From the NCBI GenBank assembly GCA_051294905.1, contig CM119379.1:23312001-23376000 (forward strand): DNA of 64,000 nt, in the 5' to 3' direction. This stretch comes from Botryllus schlosseri. Lineage: Eukaryota. The notes under the pieces were generated by a model. That model ran no database searches. It worked only from the letters and a program-made list of their open reading frames with translations, and had not been told where the DNA came from. The stretch's first letter is position 1. Every line of letters begins with the position of its first letter. Positions 24,320-58,500 of this stretch are shown in pieces. The position numbers and the translations under genes are program-made.

Positions 24320-25650
24320 TCAAACAGCAGTGATCGGAAATACAGGCGTTGCTAGTTGTTGTTCTTTAGGAGCTGTAGCTTGCGGTGGAGGTCGTCTGGT
24401 GTCCGGAACAGCTCTTCTCAATCGCGTTATTGCTGGAATATCGAATCTCCAGTTGGTGATCGTTACTGGGTCTTCTTCTTGTGGCGGCTGGTCGTTTCGC
24501 TTGCGCTCTGAGCAGAGTACCGCGGAACATGCTGCTATTAGCATCACACAACCGAAACCGATAAAGGCAAACCCAATTGTTGAGATGTTACTCTGCAGAC
24601 CCATGCTTATTGCTCCGTATAATGCCATGGTTATGCCGGTGATCAAGAGCGCCGCGCAGATAATGAGTACACATTCTGTCTTTGACGCTCTGGGTTTAGT
24701 AGTGCCTGCAAATAAAGCCAATATTGCCACTCGTGGAATGTAATTCGGACGTGCCGCCGTACGCGAGATTAGTCGGGCCTATACCGCAGCGCTGGTTTTG
24801 ACCGTAATGACTTTTCAAGTACAATTTATACAACGGGTGTGGTCGTGACGTCGCTGGCGAGGAAGTAGATCATAATATAGAATTGTTGATTGATAACGAC
24901 ATCCGCGGTGCCCGGCTGACGCGATGAATCTACTGCGCCTGAGAATACTGGACCTCCGTGCCTGGTATGTACTATTCAAAATAGGCAATGTTGCAACATT
25001 AAAAAATGAGGCTTGTAGAAACTCAAGCCAATAAAAGAAAGTGATGTTACTGTACTGTATGGGCTTATATGCGGATTATGGTAGTACACAATTTTCGCGG
25101 CGCCTATCATCCATTTTGAGCTGGTATTTCGGTGAACGTGACACGACCTGCAAAGTCGAAAATATTCAAGTTATCGTGGCAATATATTCGTCGATCTGGC
25201 ACATACGCAGCCACCATAAGTGACATTGTGAAAGTGGATTGAGTAAGCCTATGGTTGTTCGCGGCGATTTCACGACAACACACGCACCGTATTTCTATAC
25301 AAATTAACAAAATGTTTATCGCGGCACCGCTTAACCTACACACACACAGTGCAATTAAAATCCATGAATGTTTGTTGTTTACATTCTACCAGGCCTTATA
25401 CACCATACTTTCAGTGCGACTGAACAGATCATTTCACTCGAAACCAAAAGCGCAGCCTTATTGTTTTTTTTTTGAGGCTATACTTACGGTAAGTTTCTTC
25501 TTCAGGATGCGTCGGAATCCTTATAGGCCTAAACTTTGGTCCGGGAAACTGTAGATCTGGGTGCTCGACTCCACTCCAAGTGCTAACCATGTCCACAAAG
25601 TCAAAATGACACGAGAAGTCTTCATACGGACAGCGTTCATAGATCGGCAA
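24320..25650 (-). CDS. Predicted two-TM hairpin membrane protein, ~190 aa (cluster member 1)
   Basis: Exon 1 25488-25650 (MPIYERCPYEDF...PEEETY, phase-1 donor GTAAGT) joins in frame to exon 2 24320-24729. Exon 2 encodes hydrophobic CVLIICAALLITGITMALYG and ISTIGFAFIGFGCVMLIAACSAVL, then a Pro-rich tail. The acceptor (TTCCACGAG) is weak. Confidence 0.65.
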
Positions 25651-26573: not shown

Positions 26574-26711
26574 TGTGATTGTGATTAACGTAATGATTAT
26601 GTGTGTGCTCCCGACGCTCCTGTCGCGCGATCGACAGAACGGGCTCGAAGGCGAGAGGACTGGTTGTGCGGTTTTTACTGAAACGTTTTAAATACATTGA
26701 ACTATATTACA
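26574..26711 (+). repeat. 5' LTR (138 bp)
   Basis: TGTGATTGTGATTAAC...AACTATATTACA; identical to 32555-32692 except TGTCGCGCGA versus TGTCACGCGA. Confidence 0.97.
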
Positions 26712-26726
26712 AGCTATCGCGGCACA

Positions 26727-28844
26727 ATGGCGAATATGAAGTTAACTGATATTGTGAGGAGTTATGAAGATTATCCAACATCTGGTGATTTTGCAAAGTG
26801 GGTTGAGAAACTGGAACTGGTCGCCGAGCTGCAAGAACTGACGGACAAACTGCCAACTATTTTCCCATTGCTGTTGGATGGCCCTGCATTTGCAGTGTTC
26901 AAGCAGTTGCCAGAAGGCGACAGGAAGGATTACAAGAAGTCGAAACAAGCTATTTTGAACGCGTTTGGAGTGAATTGCTATGACGCGTATAGCGAATTCC
27001 AGCGAAGAATACTGCTGGATGAAGAACCTGTCGATGTGTACCTTTCCGACCTAAAAAGGCTTGCGCTATTGATTGGGATCAGACTTGGACAACTAGATAA
27101 TTCTAGTTGTCTAATTTCACTAAATTAGAGCGAAATACCAGTAATCTAATTCTAATCTAATTTGTGAAATGTTTCCATGCGCTAATTCTAATTCTAATCT
27201 AATTTGTGAAATGTTGTTATGCTCTAATTCTAATTCTAATCTAATTTGTGAATTGTCCTTATGCTCTAATTTTAATTCTAATCTAATTCATTGTTTTCCT
27301 GAAAATTCCTCTTTGTCCGAGTCATATTGCAGTGACTTGACAAGAATAATCTCGCGCAGGGAAGTCCAATGCAAAGTCGCCATCGCCTTACATACACCGA
27401 TCAGTCATAGTAGTTATTATGGCGACTAATAGCCTGCTAGAGTAGCTTGTATAGTCTGCGAACAACATTCTAGTTTTTAAAACTTTACGTTAGTACAACG
27501 CCGTTCTTACTAACGTGGGCAATGTCCATGACTACCACAAAAGAAGTAAGATTTTATTAAAGTAGTACAAATACAACAAGAAATATCATGATCATAAACG
27601 TCATTTTATTTTGAACGATTGTGAGCTGCGTACGATACCCGACATCGACAACGCTTTCCAACGACTAGTGAATCGATATTGGGGCTAGCCAGACATGTCA
27701 CTATATCTGAAAGACTATCTCATCCTAAAGATTGATCTTGTGGGGACGTCCTATAGGCTACATCGTTTTCGAAGCGTCTCTGTCTTGGCGATGTCTGGGC
27801 CATTGCATGTGGAGGCAATATGCATATTGGTATCACTTAATTGTCTCTCCGTGGAATGCTGTTGCCATCGCCGAAGCCGTTTCAGCTAGTGTCGAATAGT
27901 GTTGTTGGGCACAGGCGAATTGCTTATTTTGAAACAACAACAATAATAATAATTGGAAACTGAAATCAATTTTAGCAATTCAAAATGCTTTATTTAGCGT
28001 ATTTCCAAAATCTCAAATCAGATCGACGACCGCGATTGCGGTGACCCCTGGTATAGTAGAAAGCGAGTCAAGCTTGGTGTACAGAAGTTACCCATTCTCA
28101 TGGTTATGGGAATGCACTGTTGTTTTTGTTGTTGTTGTTTATTAAACAAAAATATGTGGCGCTAATCGCCTGACGGCCTTTTGTACCACGCACTGTGATT
28201 TGATGTGAACTGATGTGGCTGTATTCATTTCCCATTCACAATTTCATTCAATTTCCAAGTTTTCGCGAAAGTCAGTAACTCTAATTCTAATTCTAATTTA
28301 ATTTAGAAAATGCTTTGTAGCTCTAATTCTAATTCTAATCTAATTTAGAAAAGCTGTGTTGCTCTAATTCTAATTCTAATCTAATTTGGGAAAACTGTGT
28401 AGCTCTAATTCTAATTCTAATCTAATTTGGAAAAATCTGTGGAGCTCTAATTCTAATTCTAATCTAGTTCAAAAAAGCTAAAAATTTTCTAGTTGTCCAA
28501 GTCTGATTGGGATGAGAGTGGATGCATCCGAGGCGTTAATTCGGTGCGCGTTTGTAAATGGTCTCCCCCCAGAGGTTTCATGTCAGTTAAAGTCTGTAGC
28601 AGAAGTGGACAAAATGAATTTGAGTGATCTCGTCGCGCGGGCACGAGTAATAATGTCGGTCAGGAGCAGCTTCAATGTATCGTGCGCGGTCGGTTCGCGT
28701 CAGCGGAAGGACAACTGTTTTTTCTGCGGGAAGCCTGGTCACTTTGCTAAAGAATGCCCTATTAAAGAGCCAAGAAATGACGGTAACGAAATGGCCTGGA
28801 GACAACCAAGATGTTTTTCCTGTGGTAAGCTTGGTCATATATAG
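26727..28844 (+). pseudogene. gag: Gypsy gag, split by a MITE and truncated in the second zinc knuckle
   Basis: Removing 27080-28505 plus one TSD fuses ...LALLIG|MRVDASEALIRCAF... in frame. First knuckle CFFCGKPGHFAKEC is intact; the second, CFSCGKLGHI, stops at TAG 28842-28844. Confidence 0.88.
27080..28505. mobile_element. 1426-bp hAT-type non-autonomous element inserted in gag
   Basis: TIR CAGACTTGGACAACTAGA(T/A)AATT (22/23); perfect 8-bp TSD ATTGGGAT (27072-27079, 28506-28513); subterminal arrays of a ~40-bp CTAATTCTAATTCTAATCTAATTT unit. Confidence 0.92.
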
Positions 28845-28951
28845 CTCGCCAATGCAGAGCCGATGAACGTCACAAGATCGCAGCAGGAAAATTACCAAGG
28901 AGAACCGTCAGCACCGGACGCGTTCTCCCGTATTCACAAGTTGGAAAAAAG

Positions 28952-31903
28952 GTGCTACCGTTTGTTGTGGTTTCAATTGGTGGAAAACCTCTCAAGGCTC
29001 TGGTGGACACTGGGTGCCAGCAATCTGTTGTTCTTGAAGACGTGTGTCGTCGTATGGGCCATACCGTTTCGGGTCCGAGAAGGATTGTGGAGATGCTGAA
29101 CGGGGAAAGCACTAGTTGTTACGGAGAGACCATGGTAATGATGGTTGTAGGCGAGACCAACGTCAGGGTGCAATGCTTGGTAGCCTCGGAGCTCGTATGT
29201 GCTGCTGGCGTGATTCTCGGTATTGATGTTATCCAGCAATTAGGCGGAGTATTCGTTGATTCAAATCTTGACGTGTGGTTTGGTGCAAAGGTGTGTGTAG
29301 CAAGTGCGGTGGCCGCGACGAATAAACGGTTACAAATTGACGATAAATATTTCATTGCAAAATTTGATGGAGCGAAGTGGACTATGGAGTGGAGATGGGA
29401 AAATGGCGAGCCTGAGTTGACTAATCAATGTGGGGGATATCAGATGCCGTCGGAGTGTCGTACATCGTTTGATGATGAACTCAGCCAATGGATCAGAGAC
29501 GGGTGGTTGGTGGAGTACGATCCTGCCCGTCACGGTTCCCACGGCGGAATAATCCCGCTGTTGGCGGTCAAGCAACCAAACAAGAAGCAGAAGGTACGGC
29601 CAGTGATGGACTACCGCGAGCTGAATTCCCATGTCATGAGTCACCCCGGACTGGATGCGGCAGTATGCCAAGAAAAATTGAGAAATTGGCGCAAACGAAG
29701 TAATCGTGCATCGATCTTGGATCTCCGGAAGGCATACCTACAGATTCACGTGTCCGAGAGGCTGCAAAAATTCCAAGTAGTGTGGCATCAAGGAAATGTT
29801 TACGTTATGACACGAATGGGGTTCGGTTTGAACATCGGCCCAAAGGTGATGACCAAGATCATTTCTACCGTATTGTCACTGGAAGACGACATAGCAAGGG
29901 GAACCGACCATTACATCGACGACATCTGGGTTGATGAGAATGTTGTAGCGGTTGAGAAAGTGCGCAGGCATTTGGCAAGTTATGGGTTAGCGACGAAGGA
30001 TCCAGTTCCGTTACGTGATGCACGTGTACTTGGATTGCGGGTGAATGAGACCCAGAATGGAGTACTGGAGTGGAGGAGAGATGGTGATCTGCCGAGTTTG
30101 AACGGCCGCATGACGAAGAGAGGGCTATTTTCTGTGTTCGGCAAGCTCACGGGGCATTATCCCGTGGCCGGGTGGTTGAGAACTGCATGCAGTCATGTAA
30201 AACGACTTACTAACGAGATAGCGTGGGATGCGGTAATCCCGAATCCAGTTATGCATTTGGCTGAAGAAATCTTGACGAAGGTACGAGAGAACGATCCAGT
30301 AAGAGGGGACTGGAGAGTATATCGTGATGGAAGAGCGCAAATTTGGTGCGATGCGAGCAATATGGCGGTGGCATGCTGTTTGACCGTAAATGGGAAGGTT
30401 GTCGAAGATGCAGCATGGATGAGGAAAGAGGACGACGTAACGCATATAAATGTCGCGGAGCTCGACGCTGTCGTAAAGGGATTAAGTTTGGTGCTGAGAT
30501 GGGGTTTCACTAATGTAGAAGTTGTGACCGACTCGGTCAGTGTGTTCCATTGGGTCAAGTCAATATTGGAAGATTCGCGTCGACCTAGAGTCAGTGGGCT
30601 AAGTGAAATGATTATTAAAAGAAGATTGGGAATTATCGCGCAGCTCTTTCAGGAATACTGCATGGAGGTCACAATCCGTTGGGTACCATCGTCGGAGAAT
30701 CTCGCAGATGCACTAACGAGAGTCCCGCAACGCTGGCTAAAGAAGGTGTGTCTTGGAGTAAACCGGCGTAATGAGAACGTGATTGAACAGGTACGGGCTC
30801 TTCATAACGTGCATCACCTAGGTGTGAATCGGACGCTTTTCGTGGCCAAAAGAAGCATTGGCGAAGCTGTTACTCGTGATGTTGTTCAACGGGTAATCAA
30901 TGAGTGCAACATCTGTCGCAGAATTGATCCGAGTCCCGTGAGATGGGAACACGGGCAGCTTTCCGTTCCCGTTGTCTGGGAGCGCCTGGCACTTGACATT
31001 ACTTACGTAAACACTCGACCATACCTGAGTTTGATCGACTGCGGGCCTAGTCGATTTGCGATATGGCGGGCGGTGCGAAATGAAACGGCCGATAAAATCA
31101 TCCAGATCCTTGAACAAGTCTTCTCGGAAAGAGGTGCGCCGAGTGAAATTCTGAGTGATAACGGACCTTGTTTTACTAGTCAGAATATGCGCCAGTTTTT
31201 GAACAGTTGGGGGGTGGAACATGTGTTCAGCTGCGCCTACCGGCATTCTGGAAATGGTATTGTGGAGCGGAATCACAGAACTATCAAAAGAATGGCCGCG
31301 AGATCTGGAGGTAGTGTTGAACGAATGGTGTATTGGTACAATCACACTCCGAATTCGGAGGATATTGTACCTGCGGATAAGGTGTTTCGCTATGAATCTG
31401 GTTTGCCATCTTCAATGATCCGCGCAAGCAGAAAGAGATTGGACCGACAAAATAGTTCCAACCCATACCGAGACGGTGATGTAGTGTTCGTGAAGCCACC
31501 AAATGCTCGATGTACTACTCAATGGAATAGAGGTGTCGTTACCAGGGTTGTCGCCGACGTGGTGGTCGAGGTTGACGGGATGAATCGACATCTTTCTGAC
31601 GTTAGACTCGCCGTCGGGGATCTACCTAACCCACCAGGAGGAAGTGTTACGACGCGCGAAATCGACTTGAATTGTAGCAGAGAAGATGATGCCATTGATA
31701 CGGAAAACAGCGGTAACTCGGGTGAAGCTATTGACCCAGTCGGTACGGAAGAGAATATCACCGATGGGAATAACTCAGCTGATCTGGATCAACCTGGTGA
31801 TGACAATGTCGACCATGATATTGAGAGAAATAACTCTGACCATTCGCGACCAAATCGGGATCGAGCGCCGCCACAATGGTTGGCTGACTTTTATGTAGGC
31901 TAG
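28952..31903 (+). CDS. pol: Gypsy pol polyprotein (protease, RT, RNase H, integrase), uninterrupted 983 aa
   Basis: PR LVDTGC; RT LDLRKAYLQ and YIDD; RNase H WCDAS, ELDA, DS, NLADALTR; integrase HHCC (HNVHH...CNIC), LDITY, SDNGPCF, NGIVERNHRTIK; GPY/F-like NPYRDGDVVFVK. The frame is open from 28829. Confidence 0.95.
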   Translation: MLPFVVVSIGGKPLKALVDTGCQQSVVLEDVCRRMGHTVSGPRRIVEMLNGESTSCYGETMVMMVVGETNVRVQCLVASELVCAAGVILGIDVIQQLGGVFVDSNLDVWFGAKVCVASAVAATNKRLQIDDKYFIAKFDGAKWTMEWRWENGEPELTNQCGGYQMPSECRTSFDDELSQWIRDGWLVEYDPARHGSHGGIIPLLAVKQPNKKQKVRPVMDYRELNSHVMSHPGLDAAVCQEKLRNWRKRSNRASILDLRKAYLQIHVSERLQKFQVVWHQGNVYVMTRMGFGLNIGPKVMTKIISTVLSLEDDIARGTDHYIDDIWVDENVVAVEKVRRHLASYGLATKDPVPLRDARVLGLRVNETQNGVLEWRRDGDLPSLNGRMTKRGLFSVFGKLTGHYPVAGWLRTACSHVKRLTNEIAWDAVIPNPVMHLAEEILTKVRENDPVRGDWRVYRDGRAQIWCDASNMAVACCLTVNGKVVEDAAWMRKEDDVTHINVAELDAVVKGLSLVLRWGFTNVEVVTDSVSVFHWVKSILEDSRRPRVSGLSEMIIKRRLGIIAQLFQEYCMEVTIRWVPSSENLADALTRVPQRWLKKVCLGVNRRNENVIEQVRALHNVHHLGVNRTLFVAKRSIGEAVTRDVVQRVINECNICRRIDPSPVRWEHGQLSVPVVWERLALDITYVNTRPYLSLIDCGPSRFAIWRAVRNETADKIIQILEQVFSERGAPSEILSDNGPCFTSQNMRQFLNSWGVEHVFSCAYRHSGNGIVERNHRTIKRMAARSGGSVERMVYWYNHTPNSEDIVPADKVFRYESGLPSSMIRASRKRLDRQNSSNPYRDGDVVFVKPPNARCTTQWNRGVVTRVVADVVVEVDGMNRHLSDVRLAVGDLPNPPGGSVTTREIDLNCSREDDAIDTENSGNSGEAIDPVGTEENITDGNNSADLDQPGDDNVDHDIERNNSDHSRPNRDRAPPQWLADFYVG

Positions 31904-32554
31904 ATGTTGAGTGTATCTGTACTAAGAATAAGTGATTTTTTACATTTTGATTTGTTCGCGCGTAAATGCTTATGCCTTGTGATGATTGCATATACCTTGC
32001 AAGTTTTAGCCTTCAATTACGAATTCTGTATGCTACAAATTCCAGTTATCATCGCTTTCGTCCATCGTTTGAGGCACACCTACACCGCAGTTTTTCGTTT
32101 TTTTGTACGCCAGTATGTTTTAGTTGTGGGATCCACTTTGTGTGCTTCTAATAGCGAACGACTCGTGTTAATTTATTCAGAATTGGCCCATTGGCCTATA
32201 TAGGCTACACTGCGGGGTTACACTCAAAAGCTTTGAATTTGGGCCAGTGATCAATAGATCACGGGGGTAGGAAGACCATATGACTCCCCGTCCCCGTCAA
32301 TAGATCACAGGCATATATCGAATTTTAACTTTCAATTTGATGTATCGATATGTGTACACTGCGTATTAGTTTGTTTTTGTGTCCACATTTATCACGTTGA
32401 CTTGGCTTCCCGTGCGATCTTCAGACCAAGGGGAAGTTTGCCGTTTCATGTAGGCTATACACTGTTTTAGAATTGTTCACCTGATTTTCACGTTTGAAGT
32501 TACATCGTTGCGTTATGTGTTGGTTTCCCATGTGATCTTTAGATCAAGGGGAAG

Positions 32555-32692
32555 TGTGATTGTGATTAACGTAATGATTATGTGTGTGCTCCCGACGCTC
32601 CTGTCACGCGATCGACAGAACGGGCTCGAAGGCGAGAGGACTGGTTGTGCGGTTTTTACTGAAACGTTTTAAATACATTGAACTATATTACA
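32555..32692 (+). repeat. 3' LTR (138 bp)
   Basis: Direct repeat of 26574-26711, preceded by the PPT and followed by TSD CCTAC. Confidence 0.97.
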
Positions 32693-38117: not shown

Positions 38118-38428
38118 CTATAATGACTGCTTCTGCGGCAATACAGAAATGATTGGTTTATAATTGAGGCCCACCAAACCCTTCTCCGCCAACGACAGAA
38201 TAAGCGAGTCCATCGAAGAGAAATAGCTAGCTAAAAATACGAGGCTGCTAGCGATCAGAAGGTAAGTTCCGACCAAATTCTGTCTAGCAGTATAGCCGTT
38301 TGAAAGAATCATGACCGCGGCACCAAATATCAGTAACAAGACGGAGATCGAGAGGAATATTCGCCCAGTGTTCATCAAATGGCCGACTTGATTGCCTTTC
38401 GTGTAATGTTCATCATTTCGGAGAGTGT
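38118..38428 (-). CDS. Terminal exon of a predicted two-TM hairpin protein (cluster member 3)
   Basis: Acceptor TTTATTCAG before 38428, phase 1, open to a stop. Encodes IFLSISVLLLIFGAAVMILS and LVGTYLLIASSLVFLASYF. A candidate 19-nt first exon at 38647-38665 (MGFNFF, donor GTAATA) is uncertain. Confidence 0.5.
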
Positions 38429-41039
38429 CTGAATAAATATGCATGCATTTCATAAGCAGGGAGAATACATTCCATCAACTGATGTCAAATTATCTTATCG
38501 GAACGTTGGCCATAGGCGCCGAACCGTCATTTTGTTTGGGTATGCCGAGTATGTGACGTCACAATCGATGACATCATGGTTTCACTAGAACGCACTTTAT
38601 TACATGCCGCTGTAGTAACGTTTTGATACCAGCCTCTCAATATTACCAAAGAAATTGAATCCCATATCGGTGCGATGATTAAATTACTGGTTCGTCCGAC
38701 GACGAACGATTTGTTGGCATATAAAAGGTACTCGTTCAAATGTATCGAATAATATCAAAATTCGTGCCAGTGAGAATTTGGTGTTGCATTAATATTTCAG
38801 AATGTAATTCCAGCACAACGCGCCGCGCAAATAACGAATTAAACTGCGCACTGGCAAAAACTGCCCACTGGCAAGAACTGCGCACTGGCAAACACAGCGC
38901 GACAATCTTGAAATACGAGATTTGTCGAGCAAACAACAGTGATGATTTGATTACAAACGAGAAAGCGCGCAGCCAATCAGTGCATTACGGCCAACACGAT
39001 GGGTTTCTGATTCTGACTTGGTTCACGACCACGAGCAGCGCGCATCCCGGCTAGTGAAAACACTAATTCTGTTTGCATTGCTGCGTTTCCCGATTCACGT
39101 ATGCAAAGCATTATTGGTATACATACAATGCACAATAATACACTAACCAATTTCGGGCTCTGATTAAAAAACTGATCACAAAAAGGTTCACAAATTATAC
39201 TGAATGAGATATGCGCCTCGGCTCTCACAGACGCATATACAAATTAATTTAGAGACGGGACACGGTACGTTTGGTGGTCTAAATCGCTAAAAGAGATAGT
39301 GTTTCTCAAAGCGGGTACAGGGTACACGGCATATCTAGCATACCCGGTTGGGCGCTTATGTAGGCCCGCTTGGCTTATACATCTCAGCTAAATGCGTCTG
39401 TTATTGTTGACGTCAGCTTCAATAGTATGTTTAAGATGTGGATCCTAAACAAGTCAGGATACCATTGACCTTTGCCGATGAATCCAATACCAAAAATCGC
39501 ATGATCAAGTCCATCCCAATCCTAATCATGAAAACTTCGCGACTGTTAACACTAACAATGCCTCATTTATCACCGACCAAGGCCGACATTGCAATTAATT
39601 TGAAAACATGTTAGAAAGACATGTTGACTACATGCTGTCTATGACGATCCGAATTTACCAAATCTCTCACGGGGGGGAGGGGGGTAAGGCAGAAAGGGCT
39701 GGTACTCTGCGCATGGCTAGGTTGTGATTGGCCTCATCACTGGGAAAAACTTGAATGAATTAGAAACTGGAAAAGGTAAAAGATATGGCTCACCATTATC
39801 TGCCGAACTCTTCATTATTGATACTGTTTATGTAGTGCAATCATATCATGAAAGTTTCTCATAGAATACAATTATAATATAAGTTCTGTAAAAATTAGAG
39901 TCAAGGTAAATATTTTATCGAATAACAAGTCACGTCTTTACAGCAACCATCCAGAAATGCAATATCAGTCGAAATACGAAACTATCCCACAATGGCAATA
40001 TTTTCCATATTATGAAAATCTGTGTACAATAGAAATACACGAGAACTCGGAATGCAATACAAGGGATGGACGATTTAGGTTAATATAAATATATTCACTA
40101 ACTAAATGAATATATAGCTTCGTAAGTGATAGGAATCATTATATAATAAAGCGCAGTTCAAGTGTTGACAATCCACTATTCATATACCAATACTGTAGTA
40201 TCATGTTCAGTGAAATTACTGGTAACTGTGGAAAAATGAAATCATGAAGGCATTCAACTCTTGTAATGTGCAAAATTTGGAACTAATGTTTTAGAACAAC
40301 CTGCATACTGTTCGTGATAGGAACACTGGTCAGTGAATTGATCTGGTTTCATAATAAATTTTCAATTGAAGACTTACCAAATATCAAATCTAATTCGAGA
40401 TTTATACTGGTACACAATTGCATATGCAGAGAAATCAAGTCCTATTCTGTAAAATCGGAACTAATAATACGACAAATAGTTACAGCATATAAGAGGTAGC
40501 CGGGCGGGGGAATTAATAAAACACCTTATAAAAGTTCTACCATAATGCATCAGTACTTTTTATTACTACTAAAAGCATATGTACCATCTAACGTGCAATT
40601 CTTCATTTCAAATTGCAATTTAAAAATGTTTGTGCTAAGGAGTTGCCTACTGTCATGGATTCCAACACCAAATCATCAAAAGGTCTGAATTTGAGTTGTC
40701 AGCTACTTAGAAAATCAACGAGTAACTAATAATCCATGGATAACATAAGGCCGTACTAATAAGGGCTGACCGATAGAATACTATTTATTCAGCTTGTATT
40801 TAACCCTACCTGGGAATAATCAATGACAATGGCACATCTTCACTCATTTTGAATGAAGCCATCTAAATATGCGACGATGTTAAGATTGCCGTTATCATGG
40901 ATTAATCAAATGCAGAGCAAATTGACCAGTAAAGCAAATGCTAATCAGCCTATCCATCAACATTCAGTTTCATGGCAGCATGTTTCGAGGGATGACTAGT
41001 TATAGATTGATTTTGCGAGTAGCTAACAGCACCAATATC

Positions 41040-41820: not shown

Positions 41821-43154
41821 TCATGATATCTTCAGAGTCGCTTCAGCATAAGAAGGTGGTGGTGGTTCCGCGGATACTGAAGTTGGATACGCGAAACCGC
41901 CATATTGCATTGTCTGATTTCCTTGCATTGCCGAAGTATAAGATGGTGCATCGTCCGGGTACGCGTTGACCTCCAACCCTTCATTTGATACAGTGGGAAC
42001 ATTTGGTGGCGCTATGGTAGCAGCAACTTCCACAGTCCTGTTTGCAGGCCTGTTACGGTGAACGAGATACAAAGCAAAAGCTGCTGTGACCGACAACGTT
42101 CCGAAGGCGATAGGTGCTATACCAATAACGGTCGATACTTGAAATGTTAGTACTAGCCCAATGCCAACAAATATGATTCCTATGATCAACAGGACAGATA
42201 TGCAACTACCTGTCGATTGTCTGGAAGCACCTGTGAATTGAGAATATATTGTCAGGCAATGGTTATTACAGCAACTTCTGGATAGTACGGGAGTGCAGTG
42301 TAAATAGAAACTCTCGAGTTATTCGGTTTAGGGGTTGGCCCTAGCAGGCTTGTAACCAAGTGACAAGTCAATCTCGATTTTATAGTTGACTCGAGTCAAG
42401 TCAGCTAGTAGTAGAGGGTCGAGTCCGAGCCATCGTGTTTTGACTCGAATCAGAGTACAAGTCACTGTTCAGTTTTCAGTTCAATCCGGTTCAACCCAGT
42501 TTTTTCATCTCTGCTCGAGTGATATAGAATGGCTCGCATTCATAATATAATAATTTTCCTCCGTCTGAACAGTTCCAGGTCCCATTTTCCAAGTATCAAG
42601 ACTGACGGACAAGACACCAAAAATGTGGTAACTTTACTATTCTACGAAGTTGCAATGAAATGACTGTCTTGGCCGTCCTAGTCCCGAGTCATATGACTTG
42701 TTCGAGTCATGCACAATGAATCAAGTACAATTAGAATCAATACTAAAATTCACTCGTGTCGACTCATTTTACGTATTTGAAAAAATGACCCGAGTCATTA
42801 TAAATAACCCCGGAACGCTGGACCCTAGTCCAATTCACATAACGGTATGGAACTTTGTACAATTCATTTCAATGTGCAAGCATTGTTGAGGTCACTCGTT
42901 GATGAGAAGGATAAGAATTAGGTGGCATGTGACAGAAGGGAGGTTTGTTCATCAGATCGTGGATGAGCGTTGACTACACTGATAAATATATGAATGAATA
43001 TACCCATATTACCTATAGAAGTACCGACATGTGTTCCTGTCCTCCGATTTCGATGGAAATTCCGACGTCTCTGCCGATGGTGTCGCCGTGCATTGATGTG
43101 AGTTCGCCGCGCTCTACGGGCCCTTGCACGCCGAGCACCGCCTCTTCTTGGCAT
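41821..43154 (-). CDS. Arg-rich, two-TM, PPxY-tail membrane protein, 183 aa (tandem paralogue A, intact)
   Basis: Exon 1 43013-43154 (MPRRGGARRARARRARRTHINARRHHRQRRRNFHRNRRTGTHVGTSI, donor GTAATA) plus exon 2 41821-42230 (acceptor TTCACAG), in frame, 552 nt. TM segments ISVLLIIGIIFVGIGLVLTF and VIGIAPIAFGTLSVTAAFALYLV; tail APSY...PPPPSYAEAT. Confidence 0.82.
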
Positions 43155-43596
43155 ATTACCGACGTAACAGCTACCGAACGATCGACAGATCGGTGTAAAT
43201 TAACATATTAGTACTATATCTTAAAGCAAGTTATCGATTAGCACCCACTCCTATTTCCTTGATATTGGTCACAAACCATTCACACTCATACGCCAACGCA
43301 ATCACATTTGTTGTTGTTGTGAATATGGTTCCGTTTGGTTTCATTATTCAAAATCACAGATTCATAAAGAGCATCCGAATTTGTGTACGTGCTTACAGAG
43401 ATTACAATTTTAGTTTTGAACGAAATTTCAATGCTGCATTAAGATATCTGATATACATAAAGGCGGTTCAATGACAATGGGTTGTTAGACCCGTATACTG
43501 AATTACAGAAGTCTTGATTTGCCTTGTAGATTACCCTTATTCAGTTGCAGTAAAATCATATGTTGCCTTGCTGTACTGTTTACACATAGCCTACGC

Positions 43597-46853: not shown

Positions 46854-49605
46854 TTACATCTTCCGAGTTGCTTCAGCGTAAGAAGGTGGCGGTTTCGAGG
46901 ATACTGAAGTTGAATATGCAAATCCACTGTATTGCATATCTTGATTTACTTGCATTGTCGAAGTATAAGATGGTACATCATCAGGGTGTGCATTGGCCTC
47001 CAACCCTTCATTTGATACAGTAGGGGCATACTGCGGCGCTATGGTGGCACCAACTTCCACAGTCCTGTTTGCAAGCCTTTTACGATGATCGCGATACACA
47101 GAAAGTGCCGCCACGACAAATATCGTTCCGAATACGATAGGTCCTATACCAAAAACGGGCGATACTTGAAATGCTATTATAAGTCCAAAACCAACAAGTA
47201 TGATTCCGTTGACGATGAAGAAACTTACGCAACTACGCGCTGATTGACCGGCGGTAATGGTGGCACCTGTTAATTGAAATCAAATTGTCAGGCAATGCCT
47301 GTTACTTTTATGGCTACAAGATATATCAACTAATGATGAAGTGAGAAGGTTGACCGATAACAAATCACTGAAATCAGTGTAAAAGAGACAAACCAAAAGT
47401 GATACTTCTTGACTGGGGGGTTGGGAGCGCTATTGACTCAAATTGTTAGAATAAATACTCGATTCTGATCGCAGTACTCCATCATTGTGCCCAGTCATAA
47501 TTACAGTGCACAACCATTATCAAGGTCGCTCGTTTCTGGTGGCAGTGGGAGTCGAGTAGTGATGAGATTAAAGCAATGCCACTTGACACAATCAATATGA
47601 ATAGTATATGTATATAAATATAACCCTGTTACCTGTGGACGTACTGGAAGTGCCAGGATGTGTCCCCACCGTCGATTGTCTCACACTTGCGGTACCTGTA
47701 AATCGAGAAAAATTGTCAGAGAATGGCTATTAGAAAGACGACCCAATATGTTCAACTAATGATGAAGTCAGAAGACATGCCCATTGACTGAATCACCGAC
47801 AAGACAAGACACCCAACAAGCGGCAATTCTTGAGCTTTTCAGTTCAAAACTTGCATCCCACATCTTTACTAAAATCGAAAAATAGTATCTTGGAAGTGAT
47901 CACCGCAAATTAGATGATGCCAAGCAGCTTGGTATACTCCGGTAGTTTCCAAAGTGAGTGCCAGTGTCACATCGGAGGGGTTCGCAAACTGGAAGTGGGC
48001 GCTAGCTACAATCTGGAATTGGGGGGAGGGTGCCGTGTAGACTGGGGGTGGGCAGATCTGCTTCATGCGCGAGCTGCATATCAAAAATCTCTGAGTTAGG
48101 AGAGCCACAACACAAAAATTCAAAAATACGAATTTATGACGTCACAATGAAAGGTAGGCTGTCGAATGAAGTATATTATTGTGTGGTGTGGATGAGAATT
48201 TAAGGATGATATCAGATGCGTATCCTATGTCAAACTCTGCAGTTATTGCTAGCCTCTACGATAAAATGGTAGAGCCGTATCAGCCATTGCTACCTCGGAA
48301 ATGATTTCGACCTGCGCTAGCATCATAAATTTTCAATTTCATTGTTGAACACAATGATTTATCATTGATACATGACCATGACCAGGCACCCATTGTTGCG
48401 GGTTAAACGTTTATGTGACCTCAATTCGAGAGTTCAATTGCAAATTTCTAAAACTGTAGTTCCACCTTCCCCTAAATTTTATTAGTCTTGCGTAAGCCAT
48501 AAGGAAATGAATAGGACGGAAACAATACCCAAATTGTTAATACGCGATGCAATGAATTTAAACCTCTCTATCAAAATGGCGAAACGTGTGTCCAATCATT
48601 AAAGAGCCGCGATAAACGGTTGAAAGAGCCACCGTTTTCCCACCACTAGTATAGACTACAGAAAACTGTTTGGAAATTGGTAACAATTGAGTGTACTAAC
48701 CAGCGATCTAATCAATCAATGAAAAGATCCATTAGCATGCATAAGCTTTTTGAACAAGAATCCTCAACATACATAGTCGAATTCCCGTAAAACGTTATCC
48801 TTAAAGCGTTATTCACTTATTGCATCACCACGAAGCAACTTCAGATGAGAAATAAACTTGCACGATTTTATTCAGATTGCGTCTGCCCTGGAATATCAAC
48901 AAAGTGGTGACCCCTATATAACCACGCTATCTCTTTCTATAGAACGATTGATGCGACACAAAATACTCATGAGTGGTTGCAACACCGAAAAATATTCCAA
49001 TCAAATTTATGAACCGTTAAGAGCCGAATGGAACTGTTTCGTAGATTGGCCTGTTACGTGCAAAGAAATACGCGTTGATAGTAAATTCTAGGGTTCTGTA
49101 CCATAATTTCTCTTTCCAAATTTGTAAATGTGCGACGACACGAAATACTCCTGAGAATCACGGGAAACACGGCTCGACTTCGACGAGACGCGCAATGGCG
49201 TCACAATCAGTACATGACACGTATCAGCCATTGTCTAGCGGCGCTACTATTGTTAGAAACAATGCCGGTTTCAGACTTTGCAGGCGAAATGACAGTCATG
49301 AAAGCACCTTTAATGTCCAACTAGTTATTAAGATAAGTTTGGCAAACAATATGGTATATACACTGATAACCGGAGACCGCTGTACTCATTCTGCAGGAGT
49401 GATCATACATACGCTATCTATTAAATTCGCTATTTTTCCAGCAAAGTCATTGCGAACGACACATATGCATACACCCAAGTTACCTTCGATTTCGTCGGTG
49501 ATTTGGAGACTGTCTCGGCCAATGGCTTCGCCCTGTATTGATGCGAATTCGTGCAAGTGTATGGGCCCTTGCATGTCCATGTCCACCAACAACTATTCTA
49601 CGCAT
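46854..49605 (-). CDS. Two-TM PPxY paralogue B (3 exons); the ancestral Arg-rich frame is out of phase, while an alternative-frame ATG gives an open 190-aa product
   Basis: Exon 1 49484-49605 (49484-49580 from the alternative ATG), mini-exon 47633-47695 (63 nt, phase 1-1), exon 3 46854-47266 (open, ending KPPPSYAEATRKM). The ATG at 49605 reaches the donor in phase 2; the ATG at 49580 reaches it in phase 1. Confidence 0.55.
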
Positions 49606-49990
49606 ATATCCAGCGCACGGGCTATCTAACTATCGACGTACTGGTGCAATTCAACATGTCGAACACTTCTCATTTCCTCGATATTGGTGACAGACCATTC
49701 ATAGGCACACACCTACACCTACGCCAACGCAGTCACCTCGATTTTTGTTTTGATTGTGAATATGGTTGCGCCTGGCTTCATTATTCATGATCTCATATGC
49801 GTAAAGGTGATCCAAGGACATTGGGTTGTTGGATCTGTATGCTGAAATAGAGAAGCCCAGATTTGGCTCACAGGTTATCCGGCCGCAGTAAAATGACACA
49901 CGTTGCGTTGCAGTGCTATTGTTTAAGCGTACCCCTGTATCGTACCGATTCTCTGGCACCTCATCACTCTCTTTACGCATACTTGAAAAG

Positions 49991-51621: not shown

Positions 51622-54600
51622 CTATATCTTCAGAGTTGCTTCTGCATATGAAGGTGGTGGTGGTGGTTCTGAGGTTACTGAAGTTGGATACCGGTATGCA
51701 AAACCGACACATTGCGCTGCTTGGTTTCCTTGTATAGTTGAGGTATAAGATGGTGCAGTGCCAGGGTATGCACCGACATCCAACACTTCAGTTGATACAG
51801 TAGAAACATCTTGCGGTGATATGGTAGCAACAGCGTCCACAGTTCTGTTCGCAGGCCTTTTACGATGAACAAGACAAAAAATAAACACTATCATGAGCGA
51901 TACTGTTCCGAAGAAGATAGGTCCAATCCCAACGAAGGGCGATACTTGAAATGTTAGCACAAGTCCAATACCAAAAAATATGATACCATTGACCAGCAAA
52001 CCATATATGCAACACCAACCCACCGATTGTCTGGCGGAACCTGTTAATTGAGAATATATTGTCAGGCAATGGTTATTACTACAACAGGAGTGAAACCCGA
52101 GTGTCTGCGTGGCATTTGGAATTCTGACGCCAAGTAGGTATTTGACATCTGTACGACTGAATAGCTAGATGGCGTTTGAGACGCTAAGTCGCTCTGTATG
52201 GCATTTGGCGTTTCCTATGTACCACAGATATTCAGACGACGTACAGCGTGCCATATCACGTCTCGCGAATAGGGTTCAATTTGAAGGTTGAGGCTTGCAC
52301 AGCAGCATTTGCAGCTAAAATCTAAGCAAAGCATGTCAGTGGGCAAGTGATATGATGTTTTTTTCATGCGTACAGTGTACTACCACTGCAAGAGGATTAC
52401 AGTATGTGACATAGTAAGAGTAACAAGACATTTTATCGTTTTCTAGTATATTGATTCATTCTAGACTGAAACAGCTGCGAAACCCTTGTAGCTCCACTTC
52501 GTATATGTTGTGGTAAATCAACAGTTCAAGTCACTGAGATCGTATTCACCTATTCAACACCTATTTCGTTTCCATGTTACTCACCGAAATTCTACACAAG
52601 TACTACAAATGAAACTCGGTGGTGGGAAGTCCATTATTAAAGGCCAGGAGGAAGGATTCATGTACAAAAGATGGACTTGTGTAGTGCTTGCTTTAAAGGT
52701 TTCTGATGCTATTAGGTTTTGAGATTTGAGAAAACTGATCCGCAATCTACTCTCACTTGATAGGCATCCGAACTCGACCATAACCGTACAACTAGAGCAT
52801 TAATCCCTCCTGCACAGCTACAATTTGACCATCCTGCACAAGCTTGTGAAAACTACCGAAAACAGTAAAGTAAACTTCCGTTTGATGAAACGGATATGTT
52901 AGTCCACGTCAATGTCATGTCAGATAAAAACCATCTCAAATATGTAGCATGTTTTTCCTGCAGATGAGAAAGAATTGGCGAAATATTGCAACAAATGCAG
53001 TTGTCATCACTCATCAGTGTCAGATCAGCCAGTGCTTATTATAACATGACTCATGACTGTATCTATATGTATGCAGTGTTAGGAATCAGATAGCTGCAAG
53101 AAGGCCAGACAGAAGTCGATTCATATAAGGATCAATATGGGTTGGGAGGAGCAGTGTGAAATGACTGAACATGCAATCTTAGGCATCAGATAGCTGCGAG
53201 AATATGATAGTCTCACGGAGTCACTAGTGAAAGGATTTAGCTATCGACCAGCTTCTCGAGATACCAGACGCCATGTAGCTGTTGGCGTTGGAATAAACGG
53301 GATGACAAACGCTATGTAGCTACTCGCCATGTCAAAATACCAGATGCCAAACACCGTGTAGCTACTTGGCGTCTCAGAATTCCAGTGTCTGTGCAGGTTC
53401 AACCCCAACTAGTGGACAAGCAGTGAATATTTCAGTACTCGATTCCAATTCGAACACTCAGTCATTGTGCCTAGCCATAATTACTATGTACAAACAGGGT
53501 CGCTCGTTTCTGGCGGCAGTGGGTGTCAAGTAGTGATGATATTACTGTTACGGTATGTCATTACTCAAATTTAATATGAATAGTATATGTATAAAAATTT
53601 AACCATGATACCTGTGGAGGTACCGGAAGGTGTTCCTGTCCTCCGATTTAGGTGGACCGTCGAATCTCTCACACTTGCAGTACCTGTAAATTGAGAATAA
53701 ATTGACAGGGAACGCCTATTACAAAGGCGACCAAATATTTTCTCAACTAATGATGAAGTCAGAAGATTGGTCCATTGACCGAAATCAGTGATAAAACACC
53801 CAACAAGCGACAATTCTTGAGTTGTTCAGTTCAAAACTTGCATCATAGATCTTTATTAGGAGCGAAAAATAGTATCTTGAAGTGATCACCACTAAATAGA
53901 TGAAGAGCTTCTTGGAGGTACAGAACTTCAATATACAATTAAATAGTATATTCATATTGACGCTGACGGTTACCCCTGACGAGAGTCAGCCGAAAATATT
54001 CGGGTTCATTTCAATATGAATATACTACTTAATCACTAAATAGATGATGCCAAGCAGATTGGTTACAGACTGGTAGTTTACAATCTGGACGCTACAGCCC
54101 CTATACAGTTCCTGGAAACCTGGATAGTAACTTCAGTGATACAGAATACTGTTCGCTAATATTATTTGGTTAACTTACTACAGAATTCTCAAATTAATTG
54201 GTGGTTATCTAACAATCAGGACTGTGGATGGCTATGTTTGTGATCTGAATTTATTCATGGGAATGTCACTTCCAAGGGAGTTCATTTCTAGTTAATGATC
54301 AAGAAGACATTGGATATGAAAAATGCATTGTTATACTGGCGTGTCCATGTCGGACATTCTCTCTGATCAAACACCGTGTCGTGTACTCCAAGATTTCAAG
54401 GCACGCAGTATCGGGCACGGCAAATTCGCTCATGATTTTAGTAGCCAACTTTTTTTTAGTTGCAGGCCTACTGTACCGTATCTTACACATTTTTCAGATT
54501 TTTCCGATGTAGACCCCTAAATACCTATAGGCCTATGCAATAGAAAATATTGTGTTGGACTGATAAATGAGCAATTAGAGGCAGGGAATGTCTGAAAAAA

Positions 54601-55005
54601 ATCAGGGAGTTTGAAAGGGATGACTACGCAAGCACCTAATACCCATGGATACGATTACATCACTGTCTTAACCGCACCAAGACTAGTCTCTGGCTCTCTA
54701 CTACAGCAAGAATAATTATGGTGGTCGTTGTGATTGTGAAAATATACAAAAAATTTGCACCAATATTGATCAATAAATTCCCTCACAGAGCCATGTCATA
54801 TCCCGAAAAGAGCCATATATGGATCGCGAGCCATACCGGTATAGGTTCCTGACCCTTGGTTAATATATACCCATGTTACCTATATAAACACCGGTATGAG
54901 GTCTTCTTATTCGATTTCGTCGGTGAGGAGGCGGTCTCGACCCACCCGGCCCACCCTCCTCGGTCTGTGGGCCCTTGCACGTCCACCACCACCTCTTCTT
55001 GGCAT
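51622..55005 (-). pseudogene. Two-TM PPxY paralogue C (3 exons); exon 1 frameshifted, exon 3 fully open
   Basis: Exon 1 54880-55005 starts MPRRGGGGRARAHRPRR but meets an in-frame TAA; the homologous end HRRNRIRRPHTGVYIG is in another frame with no ATG. Mini-exon 53612-53683 (72 nt, phase 1-1). Exon 3 51622-52040 is open and ends PPPPPSYAEATLKI. Confidence 0.65.
52110..53384. mobile_element. Putative Mutator-like non-autonomous element
   Basis: Inverted ends TGGAATTCTGA(GA)CGCCAAGTAG with TGGC-rich subterminal repeats; 9-bp flanks GTGTCTGCG and GTGTCTGTG (8/9). Confidence 0.5.
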
Positions 55006-55544
55006 ATTACCGGCGATCGGGCTATCGCACTATCGACGTGCTGGTGCAATTTAACATGGCGAGAACTCCTCATTTCCTTATATTGGTCACAGACCTTATA
55101 CTACACAGTCATACAATACACATACCTGACATACGCCTATACATACGCCAACGCAATCACCTTTGTTTTGTTGTTGCAAATATATGGTTCCGCCTGGCTG
55201 CATTATTCATGATTTGATTCATAATGAGCACCGAACACTAGTGCTCATAATATATCCTATTATCCGTCCAAATAGCGATTACTTTCATCATTAGTTTTGT
55301 GAACGAAAATTTCGACTCTGCTATCTGCATTACTGTATCTGATATGCCATTCGTAACGGCCATCCAAGGACATTGGGTTGTTAGATCCGTATACTGAAAT
55401 ACAGAAGTCCGGATTTGGCTTATAGGCTATCCATATTCAGTCGGAGTAAAATCACACGTTGCCTTGCTTTGCTACTGCGCTATACGCTGTGCTATATACG
55501 CTGTGTTTGCGGAGTCTTTCCCCTCTCTTCGCATACTTGAAAGG
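55006..55544. promoter_or_regulatory. Putative bidirectional promoter between paralogue C (-) and DDX47 (+)
   Basis: 539 bp separate the divergent ATGs, and the block is conserved in both upstream duplicate units. Promoter function is inferred from the geometry only. Confidence 0.55.
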
Positions 55545-58500
55545 ATGGAAGCTAGTGGTATCGACACCAGTGAAAACCAAGAAGAGATTGAAGCTGTATC
55601 GGAGCTGCTGCAGAATGATGCTGATGTCACATTTAAATCTCTCGGCTTGAAGGACGTCCTGTGTGAAACCTGCGAAGAGCTGAAATGGAAGACCCCGTCA
55701 AAAATACAGCAGGAATCCATCCCGGTTGCCATTGAAGGAAAAGATGTCATAGGTCTTGCAGAAACGGGTTCTGGAAAAACAGGGGCATTCTGCTTACCAA
55801 TCCTACAAGTAAGTCAAATTGTGCTCAGCTTCACTATATAACGTTACCCAGTCTATCCACTTATCCAGTGTGTATACGTGCAGTATACTGGAAAATAATA
55901 TATTAAATGACCAGGACCATAATTCGAAATACTTGTAAACAGTTTAATTCGAAAGCAGCTTGCATACTAATTATGGAACTACCGTAGTAAAAACACCCTT
56001 GAAGACTTGATAACTACATTAACTGGCATTATCGCAATCGATTGAACAGGGTTGAATCAATGTATACCTTTTCTGCATGTAATTGTGTGTGATGGTAATC
56101 TTTTGCGCGTAACAGATCCGATTTTGTGACGTGATGAGACTAGAATTGGGTTATTATCCAGAGTGGAATCGGTGGCAACGACACGCAAGCATTTATATCT
56201 GATCACGCCGATTAATAAATTATGCTGATGTCACACAGCGATATCAGAGTCCAGATCCAGAATAAGGCGCTTGCGCTTTACAATAAACTCAAGCAAGCGT
56301 GGCATTTGCGTAACAGTGAATATACGTCCGGTCCGGTCCTACCAGGTCTATTTTAGCACATTGTGTCGTTTAATAAGTAATTCAGTATTGAATCAGAGTG
56401 AAAAATATTTCCGTCACACGGATGAAATTTTCCAATCCCCCGAGAAATCCGTCTGTCACGCACAACATGTTGTCAAAAACAACCACTGATTCCATTCTGG
56501 GTTATTATTTCTCTGTGAAATCTGTCTTAAGAGTCTGAATATAACATCTTGATTCCTCACTGAGTGAACAGCAGGTCAGCAGTCCGGTTGTAATTATTCC
56601 TTGTTTCTAATAGTAGGCTACTGGTATATTTCTCATAAAAATTTATCTGATTGATTGCTTATGTGAAACGTCGAGCTCGCTGAGAACCGAAATTTCTGCA
56701 AAACTTGAGACGTCAATTTGGGATTCGTTTCTATGCACACAGTTTGATTCAAAATGAACCAAAATTCCACAGAGCCAGGATTGACAGCAACGACACGCGC
56801 GATTTTCCGTCTAATAAATAATTGTTCTGTGCAAAACATTGCCGAGAACAACCAACGTTTCCAGTCTCTCCAGAAAGTAGGCTAATTTCGGCACTTCTGA
56901 GAAATTTTTAAAAGTTCTTCTAATGACACTGGGCTACAATTATGGATTATGTTAGTGAATGTTCTTCACTACTTCTGATTTGGTTGAGGGCTCACTAGCA
57001 TGCAGTCCCACACTGTCGAGAGAAAAGGGGCATGATGTCTGAGGTGAGACGTGAAGGAGCGGTGATGTGGAGACTTCAAAAACCATACTTCCTTCTGCTA
57101 AATGCAGAATGTGGAGACTTCAAAAATCTTACTCCTTAAATGCAGAATGTACACAGTATTGAGACTAACACTCGATAGGGATCATATTCTCTGCAAATAT
57201 TTTGTTACAGGCTCTCCTTGACACTCCTCAGAGAATATTTGCGCTCGTGCTGACCCCCACACGCGAGTTGGCATTTCAAATCGACGAACAGTTCAAAGCG
57301 CTCGGCTCCGCTATCGGTATAAAAACAGCTGTCGTGGTTGGTGGCGTGGATATGATGGGACAGTCAATAATGTTGGCAAAGAAGCCCCACATAGTTATTG
57401 CCACACCAGGTAATTTCGCCTATGACTGAAATATTTTTAATGTTTCATGTGGTGCCGAACTGTATTTCAGGGAGGTTGATCGATCATCTTGAAAAAACAA
57501 GGGGATTTACGTTGCGCACCGTGAAATTTCTTGTCATGGACGAAGCTGACAGAATTTTGAACATGGACTTTGAAGCTGAAGTTGATAAGATTTTGAAGGT
57601 ACAATGAATTTTCGTTATGTTGTTGATTATATGAAGTCTATGTAAATTTTGAATAAAATGTCACCGATAAACCGGCCGAGAATTACAAAATCACGATTTA
57701 AATTTCAGAGGTGGTCAGTAATGAAGTACTTTTACTTTTTAGAGTAACCCTATCAAGTGTGTTACCTACTTTTTATGTTATGGATTTTAAAAGGCATAAA
57801 GTGAAATTGTCACTGTATCATTGAACAACAACGGCACGGCATATATTTTCAGTTATTGTTCACATTTGTAGTGTCATCAGTAGGGCAAGTTTTTTGTTAC
57901 ACTTAAATCCGTGGAAAGTTGCATTTCTTTTTTACAAAAGTTGCACTAAATGACAACATTTTGGTCGGTGGACTAAAAAAAATGAAAAAAAAAGGTCAAC
58001 TTTCCGGCTCAGCTCCCAAAATACCCGTTACAGCGTTCCTTCAGTGCTGATTTACGGTATTTCAGTCGAATTTGGCCGTGTATTTCACCAAAATTCTCGA
58101 AAAACAGTGACATAATCAAGCGATCTATTTACATATACTGTCAAATATTTCCAGTAAAAAGTGCATGAAAAATCATAAAAGTTTCATGAAAAATCGAAAA
58201 AGTTGCAAAAAGTTACACTACAAGATTCCTTCAAACAGCTTAAAACAGCATTCTACATAACTTCCGAGCATTTAGGAAGCTGCCGGAAGCTGTAAAAAAA
58301 AGGTGCAAAAACTTGCCCTAGTCATCAGTCATTTTGCATAAGCTGAAAAGTGGCATTTTGCATGTCCCGAATGTAACCAACTCTATTTAACTGCTAGAAC
58401 TCTAGAAGCATACGGCCCCTCGACCAAAGTTGCAGTACTTTCCATACCTTTCATTTTCTACTTCCAAGTAGTTTATACACGGTCTTGTAAATTCATACTC

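Follow-up and report, generated by a model that had tools for sequence, protein, structure and literature searches.

An arginine-headed membrane hairpin with an invariant PY-motif tail in Botryllus schlosseri: a candidate adaptor of NEDD4-type ubiquitin ligases

The DNA analysed here is a stretch of 64,000 nucleotides from Botryllus schlosseri (assembly GCA_051294905.1, contig CM119379.1, positions 23,312,001 to 23,376,000 of the forward strand), which we call the window and in which all positions are counted from the first letter. Its minus strand carries three tandem copies of a small gene, paralogues A, B and C, and the intact copy, paralogue A, encodes a protein of 183 residues (protein A) that joins an arginine-rich, lysine-free N-terminal head, a hydrophobic hairpin of two helices and a tail with an invariant PY motif close to its end. 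The three modules recur together in relatives from other samples, and both coding exons are under purifying selection. As to function, we favour, with confidence and doubt about evenly balanced, the reading by analogy that protein A is a PY-motif adaptor or substrate of NEDD4-type ubiquitin ligases, with both ends in the cytosol and a lysine-free polyarginine head. Relatives outside the window are referred to by P numbers (proteins) and L numbers (contigs). The features of paralogue A are the following.

43013..43154 (-): coding exon 1, the arginine-rich head (residues 1-47 and the first base of codon 48), from the open-reading-frame reading; kept in P0001, L002 and P0005
42231..43012 (-): intron of 782 nt, GT..AG, phase 1, from the splice-site reading; position and phase shared in relatives
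41821..42230 (-): coding exon 2, the hairpin and tail (residues 48-183 and a TGA stop), from the open-reading-frame reading and tblastn
43113..43154 (-): near-invariant N-terminal motif MPRRGGARRARARR, the first 14 codons, with arginines at positions 3-4; 13 of the 14 residues are the same in L004/P0005
42061..42204 (-): predicted hydrophobic hairpin of two helices, residues 57-104, from hydropathy, the AlphaFold2 model of the orthologue P0005 and invariant columns
41938..41949 (-): APSY, residues 142-145, a subfamily-specific xPxY, replaced in P0004 and P0005
41836..41865 (-): PPPPSYAEAT, the PY-motif block, residues 170-179; PPPSYAEAT is invariant in all eight family sequences
41830..41832 (-): Lys181, the sole lysine of protein A, six residues past the PY tyrosine, from composition and the family alignment
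43246..43572 (-): upstream block duplicated along with the gene, 71-73% identical by blastn to 49664-49806 and 55142-55468, upstream of B and C

Specifically, exon 1, read from 43154 to 43013 on the minus strand, opens with an ATG start and ends at a GT donor, and the AG acceptor before exon 2 is preceded by a pyrimidine-rich stretch; once joined, the two exons make up 552 nt, which translate into 183 residues and a stop codon. An initial annotation of this DNA had described an intact 183-residue product with 18 arginines and no acidic residue in its first 38 residues, two transmembrane helices and a tail containing APSY and PPPPSY, and all of these elements were recovered by translation and hydropathy analysis at the coordinates listed above. 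The exon junction that it had proposed, 43013/42230, is supported indirectly, through relatives that share the position and phase of the intron and through two already-spliced contigs from other samples. As regards the former, the genomic contig L002 shows a first exon of 184 nt, a GT..AG intron of 71 nt and a second exon, with all three modules present in its spliced model, and the genomic contig L003 has a splice acceptor at the homologous position; in paralogue A, L002 and L003 the intron is in phase 1 and at the same position, in all cases about ten residues ahead of the first helix. As regards the latter, L001 and L004, which encode P0001 and P0005, are contiguous, with no intron and with untranslated flanks, and look spliced.

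Comparing L001 with L002, the ratio of nonsynonymous to synonymous substitution rates (dN/dS) of exon 1 is 0.14 in the arginine frame and 1.4 and 1.35 in the two alternative frames, and that of exon 2 is 0.22; the last exons of A, B and C, compared pairwise, give values of 0.41-0.56. Because dN/dS is this low in the arginine frame and about 1.4 in the others, the arginine-rich reading is what selection acts on, and the frame is under purifying selection and not a by-product of GC-rich promoter-proximal sequence. Head, hairpin and tail occur together in four full-length sequences belonging to two subfamilies; P0001 (201 residues) and P0005 (182 residues), both full length, run from an arginine head opening with MPRRG through the hairpin to the PPPSYAEAT tail. 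In conclusion, the recurrence of the architecture in relatives and the selection on the arginine frame argue that the three-part pattern of protein A is not a chance arrangement, and paralogue A is, as judged from its sequence, very probably a real gene.

A word-seeded search of 5.8 billion protein clusters led to the identification of three relatives; a HMMER profile search of 1.84 billion representatives also returned three, two of them new, and a second profile search gave the same five in total. All five lie outside the window, are unannotated, have no Pfam domain and were each seen once, in sequencing runs or in a marine-biofilm metagenome. The latter is the source of P0004 (BioSample in PMC6355793) and represents a habitat where ascidians settle. 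No relative came from NCBI or UniRef entries in the searched protein libraries, and the annotated Styela and Ciona proteomes within these libraries gave no match, a result that small unannotated or sub-threshold relatives would escape. As far as the searched databases show, the family appears so far to be restricted to some ascidians. A scan for the motif hit 25 places in JGI metagenome contigs with the nonapeptide PPPSYAEAT and 5 in IMG/VR viral contigs with PPPSYAEA; tblastn found no family relative among these motif-bearing contigs, so that the pattern matches give no sign of a viral origin.

Protein A belongs to no described family. A Pfam scan with E values up to 10 returned just DUF2207_C (E 0.077, below the cut-off), the same scan of P0005 with E up to 0.01 returned no family, and a Foldseek search with the P0005 model against the PDB and viral models gave nothing below E 0.06, the matches being generic helical hairpins only. 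Weak PDB profile hits to enterotoxin and cholera toxin B chains (E 0.09-1.2) all came from one redundant family and covered profile positions 73-126, corresponding to residues ~121-174 of protein A in the disordered tail; Foldseek found no fold match to the pentamer-forming domain of enterotoxin B, and we judged these hits to be due to chance. A literature search for arginine-rich membrane proteins with PPxY motifs retrieved just reviews and engineered vesicle loaders, and no natural protein with the combination. The statement of the initial annotation that the combination is not known from a described protein is thus borne out: there was no Pfam family, no significant sequence or fold match in the PDB, and five unannotated relatives only.

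Residues 1-38 of protein A contain 18 arginines (47%), no lysine and no aspartate or glutamate, and exon 1 encodes 18 of the 22 arginines of the whole protein. The heads of the four full-length members hold 19-22 arginines, 5-7 histidines, 0-1 lysine and 0-1 acidic residue, with 3-4 hydrophobic residues, Met1 included, in the first 45 and a mean hydrophobicity of -0.75 to -1.37. MPRRG, with arginines at positions 3-4, opens all four. The N-terminal 14-mers of A and P0005 are identical at 13 of 14 residues although 7 of the 14 codons differ synonymously, whereas P0005 and the hairpin-and-tail piece of A share only ~35% identity overall in the family alignment; the head thus holds a defined N-terminal motif besides bulk charge. 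The term protamine-like, which had been applied to this N-terminus, is apt for its composition, near half arginine without acidic residues, as in protamines and arginine-rich nucleic-acid-binding arms, and does not extend to kinship, no protamine family being matched in the Pfam scan. Moreover, protamines and such arms are soluble and either nuclear or virion-internal, whereas in protein A the arginine-rich segment is fused to a membrane hairpin and bears a conserved N-terminal motif.

The second module rests on the sole strongly hydrophobic stretch of protein A, the 48 residues 57-104, which are interrupted just by TFQVS (76-80); Kyte-Doolittle windows of 19 residues exceed 1.6 across most of residues 51-104. 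An AlphaFold2 model of P0005, computed with the family alignment as input, places helices at 54-79 and 82-113 with a predicted local distance difference test score (pLDDT) of 87-90 and a two-residue turn between them. In the same model the head scores ~53 and the tail 35-40, so that the latter looks disordered, and the mean is 58.9. Across the eight family sequences, the invariant hairpin columns are Gly, Gly-Leu, Phe, Ser, Gly, Pro and Gly, and a few Thr and Pro columns directly after the hairpin are likewise invariant. According to the positive-inside rule, positively charged flanks stay cytosolic. The N-terminal flank of the hairpin in A has a net charge of +19, the C-terminal flank reads HRNRPANR, and the turn is neutral and only 2-3 residues long; under this rule, both ends of protein A are therefore predicted to face the cytosol.

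In the third module, PPPPSY occupies residues 170-175 and its PPPSY core 171-175. No long block other than the nine residues PPPSYAEAT is invariant, and the model shows the tail around it as disordered; an invariant short block in such a context bears the signature of a short linear motif. Specifically, it has the [L/P]PxY core of a PY motif, lies in the segment of low pLDDT and is conserved in 8/8 sequences; its cytosolic placement would follow from the flanking charges. Since PPPSYAEAT is the sole invariant block of this disordered tail, recruitment of a WW domain, and through it of a NEDD4-type ligase, is plausible. APSY was considered as a second PY motif and was rejected, as it does not fit the canonical [L/P]PxY pattern and is missing in subfamily 2 (P0004 and P0005).

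Lysine is scarce in this protein. Only 1 of 183 residues of protein A is a lysine, compared to 7-10% in neighbouring genes, and the probability of at most one lysine in 135 non-membrane residues at the lysine rate of those genes is ~1e-4. In the alignment, 6/8 sequences have the tail lysine in the same column past the motif, and in P0005 it lies one residue away. The head is selectively lysine-free: copy A has none there, and the relatives have no more than one. Lysine-free stretches have been found enriched in components of the ubiquitin system and in proteins beside ubiquitin ligases, and have been proposed to avoid stray ubiquitylation (PMC10169902). Given a protein nearly free of lysine and a lone lysine just past the PY motif, ubiquitylation might be confined to one site.

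The closest known design appears to be that of yeast Sna3. In this two-transmembrane protein, a PPAY in the cytoplasmic C-terminal tail is the binding site for the WW domains of Rsp5, group-I WW domains of Rsp5/NEDD4 being binders of PPXY; the protein has very few cytoplasmic lysines and a single ubiquitin acceptor, K125, in its C-terminal tail, and its sorting to endosomes and multivesicular bodies depends on both the motif and K125 (PMC2171029). Protein A shares the two transmembrane segments (57-104), the C-terminal PPxY (171-175) and the single tail lysine (Lys181), a likeness of architecture only. Sna3 has no arginine head, and protein A has no match to the Pmp3/UPF0057 profile (Pfam, E up to 10); Sna3/Pmp3 occur in fungi and plants, whereas the arginine-head family is found in ascidians; and in protein A the lysine follows the motif, in a tail of ~80 residues.

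More loosely, the design recalls NDFIP1, NDFIP2 and Bsd2, small PY-motif membrane adaptors that pass NEDD4-type ligases to membrane clients. NDFIP proteins bind and activate NEDD4-family ligases through cytosolic PY motifs, several of which are used (PMC12720080), and the PPxY motifs of Ndfip1 drive packaging into extracellular vesicles (PMC7582630). They have three transmembrane helices, several PY motifs in the N-terminal tail and no polyarginine, whereas protein A has two helices and one canonical C-terminal PY motif, and Pfam found no NDFIP homology in A or P0005. The cytosolic PY motifs of the lysosomal and endosomal LAPTM4/5 bind NEDD4 and steer sorting (PMC3214061), and the endosomal/lysosomal IFITM3 binds NEDD4 through a cytosolic PY motif that likewise steers its sorting (review PMC13194588). 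LAPTMs differ from protein A in having four helices and IFITM3 in having an N-terminal PPxY and a CD225 domain, neither has an arginine head, and Pfam gave no CD225 (the dispanins IFITM and PRRT2) or LAPTM profile match in A or P0005. The likeness to Sna3 and NDFIP is thus one of design and not of descent. The small membrane hairpin with a C-terminal PY motif is already known, from Sna3 and loosely from NDFIP, and the conserved lysine-free arginine head, which has no described counterpart, would be what the family adds.

Taken together, these features are compatible with the following mechanism. In the membrane, the product of paralogue A would form a tight hairpin of two helices whose N and C termini both face the cytosol, and PPPSYAEAT, acting as a class-I WW-domain ligand, would bring a NEDD4-type HECT ligase to the membrane in which the hairpin resides. 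The adaptor itself could then be ubiquitylated at its one lysine, as in Sna3, and be sorted into the endosomal or multivesicular-body route; in the manner of NDFIP, neighbouring proteins held by the conserved hairpin, rich in Gly and Pro, may be ubiquitylated as well. The arginine head would form a polybasic cytosolic domain that is ubiquitin-proof for lack of lysine; its most probable roles are to set the topology and to bind something anionic at the surface of the membrane, be it acidic lipids, a coat or a sorting factor. The initial annotation had proposed a membrane-anchored polycation coupled to ubiquitin-ligase recruitment: its three-part anatomy is conserved as a unit, and nucleic-acid binding, lipid binding and a targeting role of the head are not discriminated by the sequence evidence considered here.

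Several points weigh against the adaptor reading. Strong activators of NEDD4, NDFIP among them, use several PY motifs (PMC12720080), whereas protein A has a single canonical one, and PPxY motifs bind non-ligase WW proteins too. P0003 has no lysine after the PY motif. The invariant AEAT that follows the tyrosine is not accounted for by WW binding alone, and ~20 arginines go far beyond what topology or a sorting signal would need. Moreover, the alignment comprises eight sequences, so that the word invariant rests on shallow sampling, and expression is deduced only from contigs of other samples, the library type of which is uncertain.

The choice of the membrane proteins that NEDD4-type ligases tag for removal is made by small membrane adaptors with PY motifs, and the known ones, NDFIP, Sna3, LAPTM and IFITM3, arose independently several times. 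If the adaptor reading is true, the arginine-head family would represent a further independent invention of such an adaptor, in a chordate lineage, with a lysine-poor arginine head and a near-single-lysine design as its added features, and it would offer a clean example, found in nature, of a ligase-recruiting protein that avoids lysine. Should the head bind a defined partner, whether coat, lipid or RNA, it would show a linear polycation joined to ubiquitin-dependent sorting. Otherwise, what we describe is an orphan gene restricted to one lineage, well documented and equipped with clear linear motifs.

An alternative role for the head, unlikely on balance and compatible with the PY-adaptor reading in that it concerns the head only, is that of an arginine-based signal for endoplasmic reticulum (ER) retention or retrieval read by COPI, with the PY tail acting there or after the signal has been masked. 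An N-terminal di-arginine at positions 2-3, 3-4 or 4-5, or an RXR, retains or retrieves type II membrane proteins (PMC2799409), and the invariant chain isoform and glucosidase I carry such arginine pairs within the first five residues of a cytosolic N terminus ahead of a membrane span. In each of the four full-length members an Arg3-Arg4 pair lies among the first five residues, many further RR and RXR pairs follow, and the best-conserved part of the head is the extreme N-terminal 14-mer, as would be the case for a position-dependent signal. On the other hand, 2-3 arginines suffice for such signals and the known ones have 2-4 in an ordinary tail, as against the 19-22 that fill the head of the A family. 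In addition, Pro2 and Gly5-6 flank the first RR pair, and glycine or proline abolishes retention when placed near a di-lysine signal (PMC2799409), an effect that might extend to di-arginine signals.

Another reading, which we regard as fairly doubtful, is that the PY motif tethers a WW protein without ligase function, for instance a co-activator of the YAP/Yorkie type, WWOX, or a scaffold of the dystrophin or MAGI type, so that protein A would be a membrane sink or scaffold. The class-I WW domains of YAP-type, WWOX, dystrophin and MAGI proteins read the same [L/P]PxY core, which fits an invariant PPPSY near the C terminus, and the invariant AEAT could confer specificity for one WW domain. However, the conserved scarcity of lysine and the lone lysine beside the motif are explained more simply if the partner is a ubiquitin ligase, and the best-matching designs, Sna3, NDFIP and LAPTM, all pair with NEDD4-type ligases.

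We consider it quite improbable that the head binds nucleic acid, either retaining the protein in the inner nuclear membrane via chromatin or RNA or holding RNA at a budding membrane, from which the PY tail, serving as a 'late-domain', would direct it into vesicles. The head is arginine-rich, contains histidines and lacks acidic residues, like known RNA- or DNA-binding arms; the PPxY motifs of Ndfip1 drive packaging into extracellular vesicles, and vesicles have been loaded with RNA by means of an engineered ARRDC1-Tat:TAR pair (PMC7582630). Against this, no homology was detected to nucleic-acid-binding families by Pfam or to viral proteins by the fold and contig scans, and with just ~20 residues between the head and the membrane, acidic lipids are competitors. 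A more specific version, in which protein A is a natural counterpart of the engineered vesicle loaders, its lysine-free arginine arm holding RNA or another polyanion and its PPxY recruiting the ligase and budding machinery for capsid-free export, is very improbable.

A cleavable mitochondrial presequence, with the hairpin as an inner-membrane anchor, is an extremely unlikely reading of the head, which we rejected on composition: the segment is N-terminal, rich in arginine and alanine and free of acidic residues, but its 3-4 hydrophobic residues in the first 45 leave no hydrophobic helix face, 47% arginine in the first 38 residues is far above typical presequences, and a PPxY tail is meaningful in the cytosol only. 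Finally, it is hardly credible that paralogue A is no gene at all, a chance pair of open reading frames or a pseudogene like B and C, as the lack of annotation anywhere and the 5'-damaged look of two of the three local copies stand against purifying selection on both exons in the right frame, a conserved intron phase, spliced contigs in other samples and invariant motifs.

The three tandem copies were located by tblastn of product A against the window, with last exons at 41821-42230 (A), 46857-47266 (B) and 51625-52040 (C), all on the minus strand. The features of the other two copies and of the gene adjoining C are as follows.

46857..49605 (-): paralogue B; last exon (46857-47266) open, 65% protein identity to A; first exon arginine-depleted, with no in-frame join
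51625..55005 (-): paralogue C; last exon (51625-52040) open, 65% protein identity to A; first exon begins MPRRGG and then meets a stop in frame
47633-47695 (-): mini-exon-like piece of B, with AG/GT flanks
53612-53683 (-): mini-exon-like piece of C, with AG/GT flanks
55464-55841 (+): DEAD-box helicase, first coding exon, head-to-head with paralogue C, whose start lies ~460 nt away

The last exons of B and C keep the invariant PPPSYAEAT. Read from the start homologous to that of A, the first exon of B has lost about half of its arginines and ends in the wrong phase. B and C thus have no in-frame first exon of the arginine type, and the view of the initial annotation that A is the intact copy holds among the three. 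The mini-exons are chimeric partial duplicates, in which the acceptor region of the last exon is joined to the 3' end of an A-type exon 1 with its donor, and they join the last exon in frame only if the exon upstream of them ends in phase 1. B and C may be pseudogenes or head-less variants. The family is an example of 5' exons that decayed after tandem duplication. The head-to-head pairing with the helicase, found at paralogue C, is also present in L002, which argues that C occupies the ancestral position and that A is probably the duplicate that has kept an intact head. In addition, the arrangement suggests a bidirectional promoter shared by C and the DEAD-box helicase, part of which would have been copied upstream of A and B.

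As for the rest of the window, Rfam and tRNA scans were empty, and the family profile gave a sole marginal hit among 1661 six-frame open reading frames (24323-24778, E 0.085), which was rejected as probably due to transmembrane composition. The frame that gives this hit, of 136 residues at 24320-24730 (-), has a hydrophobic hairpin of two helices in its own right and a tail that is rich in proline but lacks PPxY, and a frame at 24330-24743 is antisense to it and nearly co-extensive with it. Another frame, of 111 residues at 38118-38453 (-), has two hydrophobic segments and no family match.

An element resembling a long terminal repeat (LTR) retrotransposon spans 26574-32692, with direct repeats of 138 nt and 99% mutual identity at its two ends (26574-26711 and 32555-32692). 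It contains gag-like frames, one of them with a CCHC zinc knuckle, a 983-residue frame for protease, reverse transcriptase, RNaseH and integrase, and two tandem arrays of ~42-nt repeats (27120-27298 and 28261-28479); it raises the local GC content and GC skew and is unrelated to the finding on paralogue A. A frame at 20599-20940 (+) weakly matches the start of the Clp protease family and is probably one ClpP exon.

Lastly, an intronless HSDL2-like gene at 14757-16346 (-) encodes 529 residues with a short-chain dehydrogenase and two SCP2 domains, and stands head-to-head with an intronless CFAP20-domain gene of 669 residues at 17462-19471 (+). The best named full-length relatives of the HSDL2-like product are those of Styela clava (71% identity), Phallusia (70%), and Clavelina and Ciona (67%), and identity to echinoderm, mollusc and amphioxus proteins is 54-64%, so that this neighbour assigns the window to the ascidians; an exact look-up of the HSDL2-like product retrieved no record. 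The pairing recurs on a contig of run SRR25569784, where the HSDL2-like product is 92% identical; both this contig and another, with an HSDL2-like product of 80% identity, stem from the run, or the run series, that also yielded members of the arginine-head family.

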